This document shows, in pieces, positions 6,290-60,400 of a stretch of DNA of 64,000 bases. Positions within the stretch are counted from its first letter, which is position 1; each line of letters begins with the position of its first letter. The DNA is from Macrostomum hystrix (Eukaryota; Animalia; Platyhelminthes). The notes under the pieces are model-generated. The model was not told the origin of the DNA, did no database searches, and saw only the letters and a program-made list of their open reading frames with translations. A program made the position numbers and the translations under genes. The stretch is from positions 4,960,001 through 5,024,000 of the forward strand of contig CATNEN010000005.1 in assembly GCA_950097015.1 (NCBI GenBank). The letters are read 5' to 3'.

Positions 6290-6582
6290 TGAAGGAAGGA
6301 AGGAAGGAAGGAAGGAAGGAAGGAAGGAAGGAAGGAAGGAAGGAAGGAAGGAAGGAAGGAAGGAAGGAAGGAAGGAAGGAAGGAAGGAAGGAAGGAAGGA
6401 AGGAAGGAAGGAAGGAAGGAAGGAAGGAAGGAAGGAAGGAAGGAAGGAAGGAAGGAAGGGAGGGAGGAAGGAAGAAAGGAAGGAAGGGAGGAAGAAAGGA
6501 AGGAAGGAAGGAAGGGAGGGAGGAAGGAAGAAAGGAAGGAAGGACGGAAGGAAGGAAGGAAGGGAGGGAGGAAGGAAGAAAG
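6290..6582. repeat. (GGAA)n microsatellite
   Basis: Read directly. Confidence 0.98.
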
Positions 6583-43815: not shown

Positions 43816-45865
43816 CAACCCTGCTTAATTATGTCCCCGGCTGATCAGTGGTGTGAGAACTAAAGTGTCAAATTAAAGCTACTGGTAAAGGGTCTTGTGC
43901 CCTCTCTATACCCTGGCCTGGCCTCTGGCTTGGTGCAACTGACAAGGTGCTACCACCATTGCTCACTGGCCAGCTCATGCTCTAGCATGCCAACGTTAGG
44001 TTCTCTAGTTAATATGTCTGGGTTGACATTGGCATTGACTGGAACCAGAGGGAGAATAACATGCTATGCATTGTACTGACAACAACCAGCCCTTAAATGT
44101 TTAGGATGATTCCAGGCCTATCCTTCTTATGCCTGCCTGGTGTGCTGGCCTCTGGAGGCTAGGGCTACTAGAAGAAGAAAGCATCTGTAGCAGCAATAAT
44201 GTCCACAGCAACCTCAGCAGCAGCCACTGCCAGCTCTACCACAGACCAACCCTCCAGCCCAGAGGCAATTTGCTGGCCATCATTAGAACTCTGCCAGAAG
44301 CAAAGGGCATCATAGGTGGTTGGTGCAGCTGCTTAAGAAGTACCTGTTGACCATTGCATATACCAGACTATACAGGCCATATATGCAGTTTTGATATTTT
44401 ATGTCATACTTAACTATGAACTCTACTCTATTCTAGAAGTCATATTTTTGGGTTTTATGTAAATTTATAACTGGCTAATTTTGCTAATATTTTTCTGAAA
44501 CTAGAATGCCATTTTTTACAGCAGTTTTTCAGGAGTCTAGTACATTGCTTATTTTTTTCAAGCTTACTTATCCACTAGACTAGCTTGTCTAGACTCTGAG
44601 TTCTAATGCAAATTCATAGAATTTCTTAGTATCACCATCATTTATCAATAATTAGGAGACAAACTGACTCACACAATATCAATTTTTATTATATAATAAT
44701 TTTTATAATCATTGACAATGATCTAAATAAATATCTAAATAGGAAAACTGCCGCAACTTTGCAAAACTAGAAGTAGGCCTAACAGGACTCACAAGAATAC
44801 ACAAGTTAATATCAAGATTAAATTTCTACAATCAATAATTTTTTAAGAATCAAATACTTTTTTTCTTTGCAATGCCAACTTAAACAGTAAAATAAAAATA
44901 GGCCTTATTAAATCTTAAATAAACCTTAGGAGGAGCTTATTGAATCAAATGGTATTAGACTTAGAATAAACTCTATTGATGCCACTATAGGCCTATCTCT
45001 AAGAGAAATGCTTGTCCTAAACAAATTAAGCAATATAAATTTAATTTTCTCTTTTCTTCATCTTTAAAAATTCAAACAAATTTACCCAAAAGTATAATAA
45101 TAGTAATACTAATAGGCCTTCACAAAAAAGCAAACAACTAACCAACTAGGCCTAACCATTTTAATTAGGCCTACATTAAAATCTTGTTTTTTTCTGACAT
45201 GAATTTTTCATGTGAATGCATTTTGAATATATATTTTGTATTTGCACCTAGACTTCAGGCTAAAGATGCTAGCTTGCATCTGCATTCTGGACAAAAAGAA
45301 CTACTGGCCCTAGGGCCTATGTAGTCCAAATGATTATTATTTATATGCGCGTTGGAAATTGGAATATTTCAGCATATTCCAACTTTAACTTAAGCTTAAA
45401 CTAAGAAAATATTGCTGTTTATTTGAAATAAGTACACTTATTTAAAAAGTTAACAATAGAACCCAGGCCTACTTAATTATCCTGCAAATCAGCAACGGAG
45501 CCTTGAATTTTTTAACTCTGTTGCACGTGATAGATGTAGATTGCACGTATGCTTAACAACGCAAAATATTTACATCCGGAAAGCAAACATATTAACACAT
45601 AGAAACTTTTTAACATTTTTTCTTGTAAAATTTTACTTTCGAAAGTTCTATATTGTATTCATGTGTTATTATATATCAGCAATATCACACTTTAATAAAT
45701 GGCTTTTTAAGTCTGCCTTTGTCAACAAAAAATATTTAAGTACTCACATTATTCACAGTTTTCGAACCGCTTGCAAATAATCGAGAATCAAACGAGAGTT
45801 AAAAAAAAACAATAAAATTTCATAGTGTTCAATGATTTCCTTTGATTCCTTCGTCGAGCCTGAAA

Positions 45866-46947
45866 ATTCCGCGTAAAAAGAAAAGACGCAGAAATCAAAG
45901 GGTTTGTCTGCACCCTTTTGTAAGTACAATGACACACATCGCTCTATTTTGGACTTTGAAACAATATTATAACAAACTTTACAAACCTCCAGCTTACAGA
46001 AACAGGAAAACTTACATTTCTTTTATATAAACCTGCTATTCAAATGTACAATATAACAGAAATAATAAACATGTATAACACATGATTCAAACTTTTCCTA
46101 GGTTGTTTAAAGAAAGAAAATATAATAAAAGAAAATAACTACACTACTAAAAAAATTGAACTAAAAAACTACAAAATGTACAGTTTAATTTACCATTAAC
46201 TAAACATTGAAAATAAAGCCTTTGTTAGTGCACAGTTGAGGGTGGTATACACTTAGAAACATTTAGAAAATATGTCAGCAATCCATGATTACATGAAAAA
46301 CTATCATCAATATGGCCTCCATAAAAGGGCATGCCTTAGAATGAATGCCAAAATTAGAACAATTAGTGCTTTCTCTTCAGAAAATATTTTGTTGGATTAC
46401 AAAGTTAGAATTCCAGCTTAGTCCAAACTTTTGCCTTTAATTGTTATTTAGACTGTTGATTACATAAGAAGCTTAATAAATTTATTGTCACTGTCACTGT
46501 CATGATTTTAGTATATTTAGCATTTAGGATATTGAAATTTCGAAAATTAAAAAAAGAAGCTTTTTATTATGTTTTTGACACTCCAACGTATTATTGAGTT
46601 AAGATATGTAGAGATCTATAAATCTCAAATTATGTAGGCAAAATAAAATCCTTATTATTGTTCACTACCCAAAATACAGAAGTATTTTTTTAATTAATGT
46701 CTGTTTTTTACCTGGAGGTGCTCCATAATAAATAAAGAAAAAAACTTTTGTGGTAAATTCCACAGAACATCCTGTTTCATTCAGTATTTTGCAAAATGTT
46801 TCATCGCTCAATCCATAAGCAAATTCAAACTTTCTGCAGGCGCACAAAGACCCAGAGCCACCCGATCCTGGTCCAAGGCAGCCGCTGAGTGATCACAACA
46901 GAGAGCCGCCCTGGGACCCGGACCCGACAGCTTTGAGGCGCATTTGA
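45866..46947 (+). CDS. AUU-initiated upstream conserved coding region (uCC) uORF, exons 45866-45919 and 46840-46947, 53 aa
   Basis: aaaATTCCG start. IPRKKKRRRNQRVCLHPF | GTAAGT ... TTCTGCAG | AHKDPEPPDPGPRQPLSDHNREPPWDPDPTALRRI*. Phase-0 join. No ATG between the AUU and the main start. Confidence 0.82.
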
Positions 46948-47006
46948 ACGCCTCTTCAAGCCCGGAGATAGGAGAAGAGAAGACTAAGGAGGCGAGGGGT
47001 GAGGCG

Positions 47007-48322
47007 ATGACGTCATTGGCTGGGCCAAGCGGGCGGGTGTTTACCAGCCAGACGGAGGCCTGCGCCTGGCACGTGAACAATCTGCCACCAGATTGTCAGT
47101 CAGCTTCGCTATTAGATTTGGCCGCTCTGTGGCGCAGCAGAGCCAGCTTATTGAATCAACTCGGCCGGGGCGCCCAGCTTGTCACCCGCATCGATGCCCA
47201 CGCATCGGCTGGCCTGACCGGAGCCCTGGCTCAGCTGGGCTGCGGTGTCAGGGTGCGAGCTAGAGACGACCTTATGGTGAGCGGCCATACTGAAACTGGA
47301 ACGATACTATATCCGAATTCATATAAAATGCGACTCATCCATGTTGTCTTATTTTTTTTCAGGGCGCAATCTCGTCTGGTCTGGACGGCTCGAGCCTGCT
47401 TTTAGACAATCCCTGCAACAAGACCAGATCGCTGATCAACTTAGCTAAGCGTCAAGGCGTTGCTATGACGACATTCGACAATGCTTCGGAAGCGGCCAAG
47501 CTGGCCGAACTCTGGCCAACTGTATCTGCTCTGCTGCTAGTTAGGGCTGACGATTCGGACGCTCTGCTAGGCGACGCTGCTCTTGGCGCCGATTCGAATT
47601 CCCTAGCTGAGATTCTGATGTTTGCCAAGCGGGTTGGCCTAGATGTAGCCGGAGTGGCTGTTGCCGACTGCTCCAAGACTACCGTACTGGAAGTGGCTCG
47701 GCTGGCTATGAGCATTGGTAGGCAGTTCGGTCATCGAATGTCGCTTCTAGATATTGGTTGCCTTGGCAACGATGTCAACAATATTGAATCAATCGCCAAC
47801 GAAGTGCATCGCTGCTTCGACGATCTGGGGCTGGAGAGCGACAAGCTGCGACTGATGTGCGACCCGACTGAAACCCTGCTGGCTCGTTCTATTGTTGTAG
47901 CAACCAGAGTGGTTGCTAAGGTAACATTGTCGCCCAGTAACGATGCGAACGAGAAAAACGGCTTGCTATGCACAGTTGGAGATTCAACATTCGGCGCTTT
48001 CGCTGGTTGGCGTCTTCGAGCCGATTGCAACGGTCTGTCCGACTCAACTCCTGAGCTCATGGCTCTTGTGCACGTGCGTAGTCTGCAGGACATCAGCGAT
48101 GCTGACGATGCTGAAGAGATGATCGCCGACAAGATCTGGTTGCAGGGCTTCACAGAAACGCCTGACGATCAGCTGGGTTGCCTGAACGGCATCGATAATT
48201 GGCTCTCTTCGAATCTGCAGATTGGCGATTGGCTGCTGTGGTCCGGCGTTGGCGCCGACGATAGCCGAATGGGCCGACGAGCGAACGTCCTGCCTGAGCC
48301 GCAGTTCCGCTGCTTTTTGTGA
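47007..48322 (+). CDS. Ornithine decarboxylase homolog lacking catalytic residues (antizyme inhibitor-like); exons 47007-47276 and 47363-48322
   Basis: LLDL..L, DNPCNK, GVAMTTFDN, GLDVAGVAV, FGHRMSLLDIG and VVATRVVAK match the ODC/AZIN fold. GTGAGC donor and TTTTCAG acceptor, phase 0. Confidence 0.85.
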
Positions 48323-48356: not shown

Positions 48357-48830
48357 TCCCTGAAGTTTAGGAGGTTAGCATAGACCTATTGACCGCCTGT
48401 CCCTGAAGTTTAGGAGGTTAGTAGCTATTAGCCGCTTGTCACTGAAGTTTAGGAGGTTAGTAGCTATTAGCCGCTTGTCCCTGAAGTTAAGGAGGTTAGT
48501 AGCTATTAGCCGCTTGTCCCTGAAGTTTAGGAGGTTAGTAGCTATTAGCCGCTTGTCCCTGAAGTTAAGGAGGTTAGTAGCTATTAGCCGCTTGTCCCTG
48601 AAGTTTAGGAGGTTAGCATAGACCTATTGACCGCCTGTCCCTGAAGTTTAGGAGGTTAGTAGCTATTAGCCGCTTGTCCCTGAAGTTTAGGAGGTTAGTA
48701 GCTATTAGCCGCTTGTCCCTGAAGTTAAGGAGGTTAGTAGCTATTAGCCGCTTGTCCCTGAAGTTTAGGAGGTTAGTAGCTATTGACTGGCTGTCCCTGA
48801 AGTTTAGGAGGTTAGTAACTATAAGAGCAG
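48357..48830. repeat. 39-bp minisatellite (CCCTGAAGTTTAGGAGGTTAGTAGCTATTAGCCGCTTGT), directly after the ODC-like stop
   Basis: Read directly. Confidence 0.95.
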
Positions 48831-49475
48831 TTTTGAAACTAGTTTCCTGGCTTAAAACGCTAACTTAAGCTTTAGAAAAAATGCTGCCATCGCAAATGTG
48901 AAGTCCTTTGTAACCACAGAAAAAATGAAACTGCTGGATACAAAAATGCTTCATAGAATGTGTGCATGAGATGCGGCTTTCACTGTTTCTAGTTGTTTTT
49001 TTACCTAAAACATCTGTTAGACGGAAAATTTTGGCTACGCCAAGTAATAACAACAGCTAATCTTGTACCAGTCATCTGTAAATTGCAGTATTTAAGCTTG
49101 CTTCTGTATCGGAATTATTTTGTTGAATCAGATTAACCAACATCAAGGCACGCTTTTTAATTCTTTAAAACGTCTGTTAGCTAAGATTTAATGCAGCCAA
49201 AATATGGAATTTTCCATATAAAAATAATATGGTCCTCCGCTCTGTATTTAGATCATCTAATGAAAGTCACTGAACTGCTCTTAGCGAAATGAAAACTGAT
49301 AAGGAGCCGACACTGAGAAAGCGTTTTCAACATTTTCAGACCAGTCTTAGGGCCAGAGGTCGCAGTACCTTTTCTAGTCCATAGGCTAATCAGATTCACA
49401 TTCTGTCAGTTGATTGCGCAAGTTTTAGATTAGTTCAAAACCAAATGCACATTTTGCTTTCCGTGACAAATTGTG

Positions 49476-51760
49476 TCTTTGAGTATGGACTGAGGCATTG
49501 TGTCTCTGAGTATGGACTGAGGCATTGTGTCTCTGAGTATGGACTGAGGCATTGTGTCTCTGAGTATGGACTGAGGCATTGTGTCTCTTTGAGTATGGAC
49601 TGAGGCATTGTGTCTCTGAGTATGGACTGAGGCATTGTGTCTCTGAGTATGGACTGAGGCATTGTGTCTCTGAGTATGGACTGAGGCATTGTGTCTCTGA
49701 GTATGGACTGAGGCATTGTGTCTCTTTGAGTATGGACTGAGGCATTGTGTCTCTGAGTATGGACTGAGGCATTGTGTCTCTGAGTATGGACTGAGGCATT
49801 GTGTCTCTGAGTATGGACTGAGGCATTGTGTCTCTGAGTATGGACTGAGGCATTGTGTCTCTGAGTATGGACTGAGGCATTGTGTCTCTTTGAGTATGGA
49901 CTGAGGCATTGTGTCTCTTTGAGTATGGACTGAGGCATTGTGTCTCTTTGAGTATGGACTGAGGCATTGTGTCTCTTTGAGTATGTACTGAGGCATTGTG
50001 TCTCTGAGTATGGACTGAGGCATTGTGTCTCTTTGAGTATGGACTGAGGCATTGTGTCTCTTTGAGTATGGACTGAGGCATTGTGTCTCTTTGAGTATGG
50101 ACTGAGGCATTGTGTCTCTTTGAGTATGGACTGAGGCATTGTGTCTCTTTGAGTATGGACTGAGGCATTGTGTCTCTTTGAGTATGGACTGAGGCATTGT
50201 GTCTCTTTGAGTATGGACTGAGGCATTGTGTCTCTTTGAGTATGGACTGAGGCATTGTCTTTGAGTATGGACTGAGGCATTGTGTCTCTGAGTATGGACT
50301 GAGGCATTGTGTCTCTGAGTATGGACTGAGGCATTGTGTCTCTGAGTATGGACTGAGGCATTGTGTCTCTGAGTATGGACTGAGGCATTGTGTCTCTGAG
50401 TATGGACTGAGGCATTGTGTCTCTGAGTTATGGACTGAGGCATTGTGTCTCTTTGAGTATGGACTGAGGCATTGTGTCTCTGAGTATGGACTGAGGCATT
50501 GTGTCTCTGAGTATGGACTGAGGCATTGTGTCTCTGAGTATGGACTGAGGCATTGTGTCTCTTTGAGTATGGACTGAGGCATTGTGTCTCTTTGAGTATG
50601 GACTGAGGCATTGTGTCTCTTTGAGTATGGACTGAGGCATTGTGTCTCTTTGAGTATGGACTGAGGCATTGTGTCTCTGAGTATGGACTGAGGCATTGTG
50701 TCTCTGAGTATGGACTGAGGCATTGTGTCTCTTTGAGTATGGACTGAGGCATTGTGTCTCTTTGAGTATGGACTGAGGCATTGTGTCTCTTTGAGTATGG
50801 ACTGAGGCATTGTGTCTCTTTGAGTATGGACTGAGGCATTGTGTCTCTGAGTATGGACTGAGGCATTGTGTCTCTTTGAGTATGGACTGAGGCATTGTGT
50901 CTCTTTGAGTATGGACTGAGGCATTGTGTCTCTTTGAGTATGGACTGAGGCATTGTGTCTCTGAGTATGGACTGAGGCATTGTGTCTCTTTGAGTATGGA
51001 CTGAGGCATTGTGTCTCTTTGAGTATGGACTGAGGCATTGTGTCTCTGAGTATGGACTGAGGCATTGTGTCTCTGAGTATGGACTGAGGCATTGTGTCTC
51101 TTTGAGTATGGACTGAGGCATTGTGTCTCTGAGTATGGACTGAGGCATTGTGTCTCTTTGAGTATGGACTGAGGCATTGTGTCTCTTTGAGTATGGACTG
51201 AGGCATTGTGTCTCTTTGAGTATGGACTGAGGCATTGTGTCTCTTTGAGTATGGACTGAGGCATTGTGTCTCTTTGAGTATGGACTGAGGCATTGTGTCT
51301 CTGAGTATGGACTGAGGCATTGTGTCTCTTTGAGTATGGACTGAGGCATTGTGTCTCTTTGAGTATGGACTGAGGCATTGTGTCTCTTTGAGTATGGACT
51401 GAGGCATTGTGTCTCTGAGTATGGACTGAGGCATTGTGTCTCTTTGAGTATGGACTGAGGCATTGTGTCTCTTTGAGTATGGACTGAGGCATTGTGTCTC
51501 TGAGTATGGACTGAGGCATTGTGTCTCTGAGTATGGACTGAGGCATTGTGTCTCTTTGAGTATGGACTGAGGCATTGTGTCTCTGAGTATGGACTGAGGC
51601 ATTGTGTCTCTTTGAGTATGGACTGAGGCATTGTGTCTCTGAGTATGGACTGAGGCATTGCGTCTCTTTGAGTATGGACTGAGGCATTGTGTCTCTGAGT
51701 ATGGACTGAGGCATTGTGTCTCTTTGAGTATGGACTGAGGCATTGTGTCTCTTTGAGTAC
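49476..51760. repeat. 27/29-bp minisatellite (GAGTATGGACTGAGGCATTGTGTCTCT[TT])
   Basis: Read directly. The long minus-strand ORFs are artefacts. Confidence 0.97.
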
Positions 51761-52226
51761 GGCGCGAGTTTGAAGGTGCTGTTTCTATTGTTGAAATCTA
51801 CGCCAATGGAACAGTAGTTAGCTCTGTTGCGTAGCAAGAAATTTGATAAAAACAATTCGTTTCGAATCAGGCAAACTGGCCGCGAGATGCCGCAAAAGGC
51901 TTCGCCGTCGCTGCTACGCTGCGGTGCCGATCATCGCGCCGCTACGTGCCGCACTCGTCACTCGTCCAGCTGCTGCTACAGCGACAGTCTCGCCTCATCC
52001 GCCGCTGTCATCAGCTCTGCAGATTCCGTCAACAATGACGCTGTCAACAATCGTCAGCTGTCATCGTCCGATGCCAATGCGGCCGCTTCGGCTCGCGAGA
52101 TTTGCTGCTCCGTGCTTTTGTCTTAAAAGAAAATAGACTGAGTGCGTAGCAACTGTAGCTAACTGCGTTGTTTACGTTGGATACGGATATTAAAAAATTT
52201 TGATTCAGTGTTTAGTTGATCGAAAG

Positions 52227-54470: not shown

Positions 54471-57400
54471 TTAGGCCTTAGCCAGATCCCTAGCAACCAT
54501 CTCGGAGGTGATTGGATGCATGAATTGTCGCCTAGCCAGAAAGTGCTCCTTGGCTCGCTGCTTGGCGGCCGACCAGCCGAATAGTTCCCTGTAGAGTGGG
54601 CGAACAAATTTCATTCGGCCAACGGTGGCTAAGAAGCCGAGGGATTCGTCCACAGACTGCGGATAGCGATGCTTGGCGCACAGGCGGAGCCAGCGGAACT
54701 TCACCTCGCTGCATTTCACATTCTCCAGGTTGTAGACGCTGGCCATGCGAGCGAGTTTGGCGTGGGGCAGAGCCTGCTCCGAGTGGAGCAGCTCGTCTAG
54801 CATTAGAATCTTCTGCTTTGTGTTCAGCTGGGCGAATGCGTCTGCCGAAGTAACGAGCGAATGAAAAAATAACGTAACATATAAAAATACATGAAAGTAA
54901 TGAGAACCAATCCACTTATAAAAATTAACGGAAGATATCATTTAATCACGAAAAGTAACTAACGAGACCACCTTATGGAATTTAACGGAAGAACTCGTTG
55001 CAGTTCGAAAAGTAACGAGTGTGACTATTCTGTGGAATTTAACGGAAGAACTCGTTGCATTACGAAAAGTAGCGATTGTGACTATTTTATGGAATTTAAC
55101 GGAAGAACTCGTTGCAGTATTAAAAGAAACAGAACAGATCAACAGTGTACAAAAGTAACGGAAGAGATCATCGGTTAATAAAAAGTAACGGAAGATGCCA
55201 ATAGCGAAGGAATGTAACGAATGACGCTATTTATATATGCTGATGAAAACGAAACTTATGGGTTAAGACCCATAGTAAATATAGTTACACATTAGTAGAG
55301 CATATCCAACAGCATTAAAGAGTTCTCACCGGCTGAAAATCCGCTCAAATCCTGTCGCTCACTGTCTAGCCAATCGTGAGCCAGCTGAACGGATGAATCG
55401 GCCAAAGTCCGATCTAAGCCGTCAGGAATAGCCACGGGCGGCATTCCCGGCTTGTGAAACCAGGCCTCCCAATTTACTTCGGCTTCTACCTTGGCCAGGC
55501 CTAGCGGAGATGCCTCGGCCAGGTGGCGCAACAGAAAACTCTTCCACTGCTCCGTGGTGAGAGCTCGACCAGCGAATTCGGCCACGTAGGCCCTCAGCCA
55601 AGCCAGCATGGCGTCCTTGCCAACCAGCGTCTCCAAGTAGTAGAGCAAGCTGGAGCCTTTCTCGTAGGGCACGGAGCTGAATGCGTCGTCGGGATCTACG
55701 CCATCGAGGCGAGGAACTAGACAGGTGAGGGAATCGTCCGGCTGCCTGATGGATAGAAATTGATGAGATCAGAATTTAATTACTAATAAATCTAGTTTCT
55801 TGGCAATCATTATGACTTGTGCGGCCGGCAGCCGCTGTGTACGGCAGTTCAGTCCATGGACTGGGGGGCCGCCACACCCACCCTCAATTACCCCAGCTAA
55901 TGCTGGTACCCAATTAATACCTGGGTGAACGGAGTTAAGTGGCTTGCTAAAGGAGTGGGGAATCGAACCTTCGACCTCTAAGTCGCTCTAACCAATAGGC
56001 TACAACAACCTAATTATGACTAAACTAGCCCTCATACACAAGAGTTTCTAGCGCAATGGACTTCAGTGGTGGAGGATTGAGTGTAAGAGTGATGGGTCTA
56101 CTCTAGGTTCCTGAGCTTGAATGTGCTGCAAGGTCACACCAGTTTGGGGCCAACAGGCTTGAGTTGAGACCCGTACAATTCACGCTCTTGAGGGCCAACC
56201 TCCAAGACACAGAGAAATGTACACTGCCTGACTATGAAAAAGTCAGGGCAGATGTACACACCTAAGCCGTGTTAGCGTGTGCCTGCTATGTGCGTGTGTG
56301 CTCAGGAGTCAATGGAATAAGCAGAATTGCCTCCTCGCTGGCTGCGGGTCTAGTGTCACCAAATGATGTGCCATTGCCGGCAGCATTCAGAGCTCACCTA
56401 GCAACCTCAACCGCGTCCCTCAAAGCATGCCAGCCCTCCAGCATAGCAAGATGCCTGGCTTGGCTGCCGTTGAGTTTTTCGCAGACCAAGCGCTCCACGT
56501 AGACTGTGTGACCCTCGTTGAGCCAGAAGTCCTCCCAGGTGGAGTTGGTTACCAGGTTGCCAGTCCAGCTGTGCGCAATCTCGTGGGCCACAACATCGGC
56601 TAGGGACCGGTCGCCGGCTAGCAGGGTTGGCGTGACAAACGTCAGGCAAGGATTCTCCATGCCGCCGTAGGGGAAGGACGGCGGCAGGACCAGGAGGTCG
56701 TAGCGGCCCCAGCGGTAGGGACCGCAGAGCGATTCGCCAGCCTATGGAGAGATGTTGGGATAATTTGAGTAGAAAAGCTTAAATCTGCTAAATCTAGAGC
56801 TAAAACTTTTTATTTTAGCCCACAAAGTGGTTGTAGTCTTCTGGTTAGAGAGCGTCGGACTCACGACTTGAAGGTCGGAGGTTCGAGTCTCGACTGCAAT
56901 CGAATAATTTGCACATGTACTTTACCAAGATACTTAACTCTGTATTGCTTCAGTTCACCCAGCTGTTAAATGGGTACCAGCCATTAGATGGGGTAATTGG
57001 GGGTGGGTGTGGCGTCCCCCCAGTCCATGGACTGAACAGCCGTACGCAGCCTGTCGGCTGCACATCTGGCCCGATTAGATAAAAAATGTAATAAAAAAAT
57101 TTAAAGTAAGGATTGAGCGAGGGCATTAGCACATCGTTTTGAAATTCCTTCCATTCCGCAAGCGCCTGAGCCCACACGCGCACTGGTGTTCATCTGTCCA
57201 GATTTTCTCATCGTCAGGCAGCGTAAACTCTCACTGTGCCTAGGGGGGGGTTGACGGCCTCGCTGCGGATTCGAACCAGGGACCAATGGCGCGAGACGCA
57301 GACACGGTTATCAGCTCCGCCACTCACCCCCACACCGAGAAGAAGCACATTAAAGAAGCAAAAATACCTGCAACATTGACTCAGTCTCTTGAAATTCCCA

Positions 57401-60400
57401 GTGACAATCGTCTATCATTTCTGGCTCGCTCCAGACAGCGCAGCGATCGCTCAGCGGCCTGCTGACCAGGTGGCCGCTAACCAAAGCAATCAGGTAACTC
57501 GGTATGGGCACCGACTGGCGGAATCGGTGCAGCCTGTACTGCTGCTGGCTAAAAAACGGAATAATACAAAGCATCATAATACATAACGAACAGTAGAATA
57601 TGCTCCATTTGTGTTGGAGAACAGTCAAAATCACTGGGCAGGAAGAAATTTGTGATTGATGGCAGTAGAAATCAGTGATTGATAACAGTAGAAATCAGTG
57701 ATTGATAACAGTAGAAATCAGTGATTGATAACAGTAGAAATCAGTGATTGATAACAGTAGAAATCAGTGATTGATAACAGTAGAAATCAGTGATTGAGAA
57801 CAGTAGAAATCAGTGATTGATAACAGTAGAAATCAGTGATTGATAACAGTAGAAATCAGTGATTGATAACAGTAGAAATCAGTGATTGATAACAGTAGAA
57901 ACCTGTGATTGATAACAGTAGAAATCAGTGATTGATAACAGTAGAAATCAGTGATTGATAACAGTAGAAATCAGTGATTGATAACAGTAGAAATCAGTGA
58001 TTGATAACAGTAGAAATCAGTGATTGAGAACAGTAGAAATCAGTGATTGATAACAGTAGAAATCAGTGATTGATAACAGTAGAAATCAGTGATTGATAAC
58101 AGTAGAAATCAGTGATTGATAACAGTAGAAATCAGTGATTGATAACAGTAGAAATCAGTGATTGATAACAGTAGAAATCAGTGATTGATAACAGTAGAAA
58201 CCTGTGATTGATAACAGTAGAAATCAGTGATTGATAACAGTAGAAATCAGTGATTGATAACAGTAGAAATCAGTGATTGATAACAGTAGAAATCAGTGAT
58301 TGATAACAGTAGAAATCAGTGATTGAGAACAGTAGAAATCAGTGATTGATAACAGTAGAAATCAGTGATTGATAACAGTAGAAATCAGTGATTGATAACA
58401 GTAGAAATCAGTGATTGAGAACAGTAGAAATCAGTGATTGATAGCAGTAGAAATCAGTGATTGATAACAGTAGAAATCAGTGATTGATAACAGTAGAAAT
58501 CATTGATTGATAGCAGTAGAAATCAGTGATTGATAACAGTAGAAATCAGTGATTGAGAACAGTAGAAATCAGTGATTGATAGCAGTAGAAATCAGTGATT
58601 GATAACAGTAGAAATCAGTGATTGATAACAGTAGAAATCAGTGATTGATAGCAGTATAAATCAGTGATTGATAGCAGTAGAAATCAGTGATTGATAGCAG
58701 TAGAAATCAGTGATTGATAACAGTAGAAATCAGTGATTGAGAACAGTAGAAATCAGTGATTGATAGCAGTAGAAATCAGTGATTGATAACAGTAGAAATC
58801 AGTGATTGATAACAGTAGAAATCAGTGATTGATAGCAGTAGAAATCAGTGATTGATAGCAGTAGAAATCAGTGATTGATAGCAGTAGAAAATGACTATTA
58901 GAAGAGACTCAACTTGCTCAAGAAGCACTGGGGAATTCGCTCACCTGTCCTGTTCCGATCCCATTAGGCAGGCGCTCATTAGTACTTCGAGTCTAGAATC
59001 GGCTCTAACAACAGCGGAATAGGTGGCTTTGACACCTGGCGAATCCTGGCAAGGCAGCAGGCTACGCGCGTGTATGGCCTGGCATTGGCTGAATAGATAG
59101 GGCAGGCTCCCACCGCTAGTCTGCTCAGGCTGCAGCCACTGCAGAGCACTGCACTGCGGACTCGTGCTGTAGTGCACTTGCACCCGAATAGCACTGTGAG
59201 AATTGATTGGTTCAGTGATGGGTCAATTAGGCAGCTCGCTGCATTTAAACAGCTGGTTTAAGTATTCTGCTCATTCAGTGTGTCATGCAGATTTAGTATT
59301 CTGCTCATTCAGTGTGTCATGCAGATTCAGCATTCTGCTCATTCAGTGTGTCATGTAGTTCCCTTATTCTGCTCATTCAAAATGTGTAGGGTCACACCCT
59401 ATGTGTATTTAACATTGTCCCAATGATAATTTTAGGAGAAGTGACACATTCTGCAGTGTACTTTTAGCTGTGACTGAAAAAAGGGGTAGAGAGACTCAAA
59501 GAGCAAAACTGATAAAATCTGAGTGTTTCAACCACCGCTGATAATGCATTGAGAGCAGTCAGTGACCTGAGAGAAGCAGCCATAGGTTCTTAAAAGTTAC
59601 ATTTCAGATAAGACATGGCCAAAGCCTAGCTAAAGTAAAATGAAATATTCACCCAAAAGTTTCTTCCAGAAGCAGTTACTACTTGATTAATTTACTTTTT
59701 ATTGGACTTACTAGACTTACTCCAATAATTACATAGATAGTCATAGTAATTGATAAAGATTTATACTGAAAATTTCCAAGAAGCATGCTTTATAATTAAC
59801 AAATTAAAATACATCCACTTTTTTAAACTCAATTTTCAGTTATTCAATCAGATTACATGGATCACATCACAACTCACTTGCCAGCAGTTGCAGCAGTAGG
59901 CAAGTGGATCTCAAGCTTTGATCCTTTGAAGTCAGTGGATGGATGCAACACAAACTTCAGGTCAGTGTCAGAATCTTCAGTGCCTGATAATAGCTTTACA
60001 GACTTGATGGACAAATCACGTGTATCCAAGTCCTAAAAATTGTAATCAGAAAATTAAAAAAGTTAAGTTATTTAATTTGGTAAATTATATACATATAAAT
60101 GCAGAGTAAGCCAACATTTGACTTAAAATGATGTCAATAAATTATTAATAATACATGTACATTTCCAAAAAGGTAGCACTGAACTACACAAAAGGATAAC
60201 AACATCAAGCCTCCTCTTGAACAACAGAACTAGGCCCTACCTGTACTGTAAGAGATGGATATGCTATGGCTCTAGCTCTACTCTTCCTACTAGCTACCAC
60301 TACTATTTTGGCTTACAACTTAAAAACAGTTTTGGCACAATAGCCAAAACTAGCTTGTAGCTATGTCTACAGATAAGTATAATTTTTGGATAGTTATCTT

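Follow-up and report, generated by a model that had tools for sequence, protein, structure and literature searches.

The described systems closest to the locus presented here are the uCCs (upstream conserved coding regions) of ornithine decarboxylase (ODC) homolog mRNAs, reportedly the work of Ivanov, Loughran and Atkins in 2008 and of Ivanov et al. in 2018. Six animal phyla and three groups of fungi are known to have such elements (PMC2811004, PMC4458265). In vertebrates, the uCC of AZIN1 spans about 50 codons, none of them an AUG; it starts at an AUU in a Kozak context, and this start has been verified (PMC2811004, PMC4458265). Two adjacent prolines lie near the end of the uCC, the animal forms finish in Pro-Ser, and repression is lost when the AUU is changed to UUU or when the last ten codons are altered (PMC2811004, PMC4458265). 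The mechanism involves a polyamine- and eIF5A-dependent pause at PPWxxPS-stop, which queues scanning ribosomes back to the weak start codon (PMC9082881, PMC10855120). Motifs at which pausing depends on eIF5A include PPW, PPD, EPP, motifs that combine a first D with Pro, and (R/K)X(R/K) (PMC5499558). The plant AdoMetDC small uORF and the MLLLPS-stop uORF of yeast HOL1 belong to a second group, the Pro-Ser-stop uORFs (PMC2811004, PMC10855120). A third comparison is offered by antizyme, for which GCG_UGA and GCG_UAG are the sites of a + 1 frameshift in yeasts; the flatworm M. lignano also has an antizyme gene, and it uses UUU_UGA (PMC1874602).

Here we present a uCC-type candidate in a window of 64,000 nucleotides of Macrostomum hystrix DNA, which is the whole stretch that was analysed. 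The original prediction, made from the letters alone, held that the leader of an ODC/antizyme-inhibitor homolog hides an AUU-initiated, intron-split uORF that contains PPW and senses polyamines. Taking the evidence together, we consider it probable that a genuine uCC lies in the spliced 5′ leader of a macrostomid mRNA for a dead ODC homolog, where its function would be polyamine sensing. Orthologous leaders came from species B (contigs L001-4), species C (contigs L005 and L006) and the M. lignano genome (L008), so that the species set is the window plus three other macrostomids, four in total and all from one genus-level group. The first 22 letters of one species C contig (L005:1-22) are Illumina adapter letters (..GTGCTCTTCCGATCT) and were trimmed prior to analysis. 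Word-index, exhaustive profile and uCC-peptide searches returned no further species beyond three macrostomid clusters. Across the species compared, the frame, the splice junction and the motifs match far more than chance would allow. The coordinates of the features are collected in Table 1.

Table 1. Features of the ODC-like locus; positions are those of the window except in the last row.
Feature	Position	Strand	Basis or remark
Leader exon 1 of the ODC-like mRNA	45775..45919	+	Spliced contigs; 5′ end at or upstream of 45775
uORF1, 14 codons, AUG in weak context (tcaATGa), UAA stop	45832..45876	+	4/4 species
uCC part 1: putative AUU start, basic run, QRV..HPF	45866..45919	+	Conservation begins at AAAAUU, 4/4 species
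Predicted hairpin AAAGGGU-N8-ACCCUUU, exon 1 3′ end	45897..45918	+	RNAfold, RNAalifold
Leader intron, 920 nt, GTAAGT..CAG, phase 0 to the uCC	45920..46839	+	RNA contig joint
uCC part 2: A.KDP[EQ]PPD ... DHNxxPPWDPDPT and variable tail	46840..46947	+	Stop TGA 46945-47
Main-ORF frame, open upstream of annotated AUG	46893..47006	+	Starts 6 codons before CTG
PPW codons CCG CCC TGG	46906..46914	+	Codons identical in 4/4 species
Coding exon part 1, 90 codons, in leader exon 2	47007..47276	+	Donor GTGAGC 47277; joint in 4 runs
Coding exon 2, Orn_Arg_deC_N	47363..48318	+	Pfam PF02784, E 5e-9; contigs; donor GTGAGT 48319
Last coding exon, QTGRE ... REICCSVLLS	51871..52126	+	Contig ends; stop TAA 52124-26
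M. lignano leader (L008): exon 1, 3.3-kb intron, exon 2	6367-6453; exon 2 from 9783		Genomic DNA

That the gene downstream of the leader is an ODC homolog, as had been claimed, is confirmed by Pfam and by the family profile, which aligns to solved ODC and antizyme-inhibitor chains. Its three coding segments together encode 493 aa, and the last of them aligns to the C-terminus of P0001. The PLP lysine of ODC (Lys69, in the AVKCN of ODC) is lost, an Asp taking its place in all four species (RIDAH in the window), and the GGG loop is likewise absent from all four. Because it is an ODC homolog without the PLP lysine, the protein is antizyme-inhibitor-like; it is catalytically dead and probably binds antizyme. 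Its most conserved block, LLDNPC.K.RSLINLAKR..VAMTTFD, aligns to ODC residues ~110-137, which we take to hold the antizyme-binding element. In an exhaustive profile search of 1.84 billion representatives, the close matches formed three clusters, all macrostomid (M. lignano and two Logan transcriptomes), with the window protein about 51-53% identical to that of M. lignano; the next matches, at E 1e-44 and weaker, came from mites, insects, a frog, fungi and P0010. The last of these is a second, shorter inactive ODC-like paralog of 354 aa, which lies on contig L010 of the run that also gave species B and matches the family profile at E 1.8e-41, and no uCC was seen in its 133-nt partial leader. 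Among the N-termini of 154 retrieved ODC homologs, PPW occurs in the M. lignano models only.

Several other observations concern the surroundings of this gene. The C-terminal tail of the protein (window 51940-52126, +) carries RTRHSSSCC and a terminal REICCSV[LM]LS, both in three species, while species C keeps the terminal ICCSVLLS alone. No counterpart of this tail was found in the ODC chains of the PDB alignment, and it may be a lipidation or degradation signal. The last intron contains two tandem arrays, one with 12 copies of a 39-nt unit and one with 81 copies of a 29-nt unit (96% matches), at window 48357-48822 and 49472-51759, which yield long spurious ORFs on both strands. A leukotriene-A4-hydrolase/M1 aminopeptidase gene at window 54471-57634 (-), probably extending to about 59200 (-), converges on the ODC-like gene, and this LTA4H-like neighbour is syntenic, being present beside all three M. 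lignano copies.

The predicted removal of a 920-nt intron from the leader can be read directly in RNA contigs. In X1 (study P1) and in X5 and X6 (study P2), which together represent 3 runs of 2 studies, position 45919 is joined exactly to 46840, with GT..AG borders and 100% identity to the window. The same contigs also skip the 86-nt intron at 47277-47362 and continue from 48319, where their loose ends carry the letters of 51872 onward. The contigs begin at 45775 in X6, at 45786 in X5 and at 45835 in X1, and exon 1 ends at 45919 in each. Because the contigs join 45919 to 46840 without foreign letters at their 5′ ends, leader exon 1 is real and is cis-spliced at 45919|46840. Neither a leader-less form nor an SL-joined form at 46840, of the kind that would leave exon 1 out of the transcript, was found among the contigs of four runs, a survey from which rare isoforms could escape. 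Reading the window also bears out the rest of the layout that had been proposed: the ATT at 45866, the GTAAGT at 45920, the acceptor ttctgcag that ends at 46839 (exon 2 opening at 46840), the stop at 46945-47 and the main ATG at 47007 are all correct, the frame is open across the phase-0 joint and through PPW to the TGA, and the spliced leader contains no ATG between the AUU and the main ATG. The M. lignano intron, at 3.3 kb, interrupts the same codon boundary. In the other two M. lignano copies, the 5.8 kb upstream in L007 and the 9.8 kb upstream in L009 did not yield exon 1. A reverse-transcriptase fragment with a YADD motif (L007:5116-5625, -) lies inside the leader intron of one M. lignano copy.

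The uCC frame itself is closed upstream by an in-frame TGA at 45833 in the window and is without an in-frame AUG in all four species, none of which has an ATG between the AUU and the main start. Its lengths are 53, 55, 54 and 48 codons; the uCC class as described covers roughly 22-100 codons, with about 50 in animals. Exon 1 supplies eighteen codons, IPRKKKRRRNQRVCLHPF, up to 45919, and the ATT with which they open (45866-68) stands in the A-rich context gaaaATTc, with A at -3. Common to the four species is aaaATT, then I[PT]RKKKRRR[NS]QRV..[YH]P[FS], followed in exon 2 by A..DP[EQ]PPD, then a middle that varies and whose indels keep the frame, and DHN[RS][ED]PPWDPDP[TN]. The distance from the AUU to PPW stays within 38-41 codons. 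After PPWDPDP[TN] there are 2-6 further variable codons, and then the stops TGA, TAA, TGA and TAG; the longer tail that had been claimed after PPW is thus present, 7-11 codons long and in place of xxPS-stop.

Codon-level conservation in orthologous leaders, which had been proposed as a check, is found. Nei-Gojobori counting for the six pairs among the four species, at 40 codons free of gaps, gives a pN/pS of 0.22 for the uCC frame and of 0.13 for its PPW block; the other two frames reach 1.53 and 1.14. One Arg of the uCC is encoded as AGA, CGG and CGA among the species, and both Pro codons of PPW are invariant, whereas half of the other Pro codons vary. Because changes are mostly synonymous in the uCC frame and in that frame only, the uCC is, judged by its codons, under peptide-level selection. 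The 21 nt preceding the AUU are unconstrained in every frame, and since the TGA at 45833 also closes the frame, the AUU is the best candidate for the start of the uCC and the codon at which initiation would presumably take place. A UUG at -24 from the AUU, a possible but less likely start, is conserved too; its context is poor and the codons after it are unconstrained. With respect to the two extra stall candidates of the original prediction, PEPP is retained as P[EQ]PP, whereas DPGP is not conserved. The macrostomid [EQ]PPD, [ED]PPW, DPDP and basic run all fall into described classes of eIF5A-dependent pause (PMC5499558). Matched to the published class descriptions, the macrostomid frame is supported as a lineage variant of the uCC type, with a function that would follow by analogy.

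The PPW codons also bear on the question of where the ODC-like protein begins. Inside them, in the main-ORF frame, lies a CTG at 46911-13 (gccgccCTGg), and in 4/4 species the embedded CUG is flanked by a purine at -3 and by G at +4. In all four, the main frame is the uCC frame -1, despite spacers that are unalignable and differ in length, and no stop interrupts it between a point 6-13 codons ahead of the CUG and the conserved N-terminus. The other spacer frames have 1-6 stops each, with the exception of one stop-free frame in species C. Shuffled sequences put the joint probability that all four are open at 1e-3 to 3e-3; counting the shared frame offset as well lowers it to about 1e-4. Among L007, L008 and L009, the three copies from M. 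lignano, 2/860 positions vary, and the copies are therefore uninformative on the constraint acting on the spacer. In species C (L005:1-420, L006), no in-frame AUG occurs before Met97 of P0003, which is already past the conserved N-terminal block, and the first AUG that follows uORF1 lies in another frame. Because the frame is open to PPW and species C is AUG-less before residue 97, the comparison suggests that the main ORF of this lineage uses non-AUG initiation. Some or all of the synthesis of the ODC-like protein could accordingly begin at a non-AUG codon ahead of the annotated AUG, which would be an addition to the uCC and would not exclude it; the best candidate is the CUG in PPW (GCC CUG G), whose two contributing Pro codons are invariant. 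However, the extension peptides are not conserved in sequence, the main-frame pN/pS in the overlap is above 1, the PPW codons largely dictate the CUG, and the comparison covers four species, with species C represented by two contigs from one study. On balance, we hold a CUG start to be possible but unlikely. If it were true, stalling at PPW would place the ribosome physically over the main-ORF start.

The uCC and the open frame behind it have left traces in the annotation as well. For species C, the gene caller chose a GTG that overlaps the uCC stop (gGTGA). In M. lignano, gene models are distorted so as to absorb the uORF into the protein: the UniProt models A0A1I8GZH3, A0A1I8GEF0 and A0A1I8H2L5 begin exactly at leader exon 2, with the uCC fused to the protein (L007:5783-6003 and L008:9783-10003), and the NCBI models begin at the AUG. 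A real fusion of the uCC to the main ORF (P0002, P0006 and P0007) was considered and rejected, as a genomic TAG follows PPWDPDPTTG and the models bypass it, once by means of a 5-nt GTTAG ‘intron’; the fused models are an annotation artefact, made possible by the open -1 frame. A -1 shift that would take uCC ribosomes into the main frame was also dismissed, no slippery heptamer being visible by eye near PPW or in the four stop contexts. In the window, the uCC ends (46942-46948) on AUU_UGA_A, and an end of this type serves planarians and trematodes as the + 1 shift site of antizyme (PMC1874602). The likeness is probably a coincidence, because a + 1 shift there would miss the main frame and the other species end differently.

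The original prediction missed the link between the uCC frame and the main-ORF frame, and it also missed an overlapping uORF1 in exon 1. The AUG of uORF1 is the first AUG of the mRNA and lies 34 nt upstream of the AUU, which would therefore be reached by leaky-scanning ribosomes only. uORF1 overlaps the AUU by 11 nt, its UAA (45874-76) falling 8 nt past it, and the uCC frame is the uORF1 frame +1. The AUG at -34, the 14-codon length and the GCG_UAA_A end are all kept in 4/4 species; conservation is confined to the first four codons and the end, between which the sequence is unconstrained. The stop is kept even though a synonymous change of a uCC Arg codon would abolish it. Possible roles for uORF1 are the control of flux through leaky scanning, a bypass by reinitiation, or a register for the queue. 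These same features would fit an entry into the uCC from the uORF1 AUG through a + 1 frameshift at GCG_UAA_A, in parallel to polyamine-stimulated antizyme frameshifting, and the ~25 nt that follow the site are frozen at the nucleotide level, with the hairpin after them. The stop in question, however, is UAA-A, and a UAA followed by A is a strong terminator that is not shift-prone; no known stimulator is present, and Rfam finds nothing. The parallel with GCG_UGA and GCG_UAG, the antizyme + 1 sites in yeasts (PMC1874602), has also to be set against an AUU that is invariant in its A-rich context and matches the verified AZIN1 start type (PMC2811004), and we consider frameshift entry very improbable.

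Donation of an AUG by a trans-spliced leader, which would join at 46840 and open a shortened uORF to which exon 1 is irrelevant, is less credible still: the acceptor is phase 0, so a terminal SL AUG would be in frame, and the M. lignano gene models do start exactly at leader exon 2, but every contig that reaches 46840 runs on into exon 1, no foreign loose ends or alternative joints occur there in the contigs of four runs, the transcripts of species B and C have exon 1 joined at the same point as in the window, and exon 1 is conserved more strongly than the protein.

Exon 1 is nearly frozen at the nucleotide level, synonymous sites included. RNAalifold predicts a helix that pairs the uORF1 start region with +25..+32, together with two hairpins. 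The arms of the hairpin listed in Table 1 are invariant and its 8-nt loop is variable, with RNAfold energies of -7.4 to -10.1 kcal/mol in 4/4 species and shuffle means near -4. No compensatory change or covariation was found in it with RNAalifold across the four species, and for that reason the hairpin is unproven as a real structure; a search of the leader against Rfam gave no match. Because the synonymous sites of exon 1 are almost frozen, its nucleotides are conserved beyond the needs of the peptide, and constraints at the RNA level coexist with selection on the peptide. That the leader is kept only as an RNA element, a structure or a protein-binding site with an incidental open frame, would account for exon 1 and for the predicted helices but is scarcely tenable when the exon 2 changes are overwhelmingly synonymous in one frame only, the indels preserve the frame, the stop and PPW are kept in 4/4 species, and covariation and an Rfam match are both absent.

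We return, then, to a uCC that would work much as its counterparts do. By analogy with mammalian AZIN1, most scanning 40S subunits would pass the weak AUU and reach the main ORF. When polyamines are high, ribosomes that had started at the AUU would pause at the eIF5A-dependent PPW, and probably at [EQ]PPD and DPDP too. A paused ribosome would block scanning, and the resulting queue would hold a 40S over the AUU, so that initiation of the uCC would rise and synthesis of the ODC-like protein would fall. Negative feedback on polyamine levels would presumably be closed via antizyme. To this scheme the lineage appears to have added uORF1, the tail of 7-11 codons after PPW and a main frame open into PPW. 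Perhaps the sensor and the main start are interlocked, with the CUG within the PPW codons (-1 frame), control of flux by uORF1 and occlusion of the start all acting together, though we regard this as doubtful. Under such an arrangement, the CUG start would be obligatory in the AUG-less species and partial in the others, the flux would be set by the uORF1 AUG, whose distance of 34 nt to the AUU is exactly the length of one ribosome, and stalling on PPW would conceal the main start codon itself in addition to blocking scanning.

If the uCC is what it appears to be, a well-studied translational polyamine sensor is extended to a lineage of laboratory flatworms, and RNA evidence together with conservation at the codon level stands behind the extension. 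The PS-stop end would then be dispensable in nature, and PPW would not. For the ribosome-queuing model, the locus provides three relevant natural variations, namely an overlapping uORF at a fixed distance, an internal stall site and a main frame that reaches into the stall codons. M. lignano is experimentally tractable, so these variations are testable.

Compared with the known systems, the class claimed by the original prediction holds in most respects: the frame sits in an ODC-homolog leader, has about 50 codons and no in-frame AUG, keeps a conserved AUU near its 5′ end and PPW near its C-terminus, and is conserved at the peptide level, all as in AZIN1 and other animal uCCs, and as with AZIN1 its target is an AZIN-like and inactive ODC homolog. 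The PPWxxPS-stop end does not hold; unlike the animal uCC, the macrostomid frame lacks xxPS-stop and has an invariant DPDP and 3-6 variable codons instead. It further differs in being split by a phase-0 intron, in being preceded by an overlapping, position-conserved AUG uORF, in an N-terminal basic run as conserved as the C-terminus, and in a main-ORF frame whose open stretch reaches back into the PPW codons. Conserved non-AUG N-terminal extensions (PMC3105428) resemble the upstream part of the main ORF in having an open, frame-conserved stretch upstream of the AUG and a near-cognate codon in good context, but the candidate start in macrostomids overlaps another translated frame and the sequence of the extension is not conserved. 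The antizyme + 1 frameshift sensor shares a polyamine-pathway mRNA, a short first ORF and a + 1 frame through its stop, but the macrostomid stop is UAA-A and has no recognisable stimulator. Finally, the Pro-Ser-stop uORFs are, like the element described here, cis-acting nascent-peptide uORFs of polyamine genes with eIF5A-sensitive steps; they start at an AUG and act at termination on the PS-stop, whereas the macrostomid element is internal (PPWDPDP) and the context of its stop varies.
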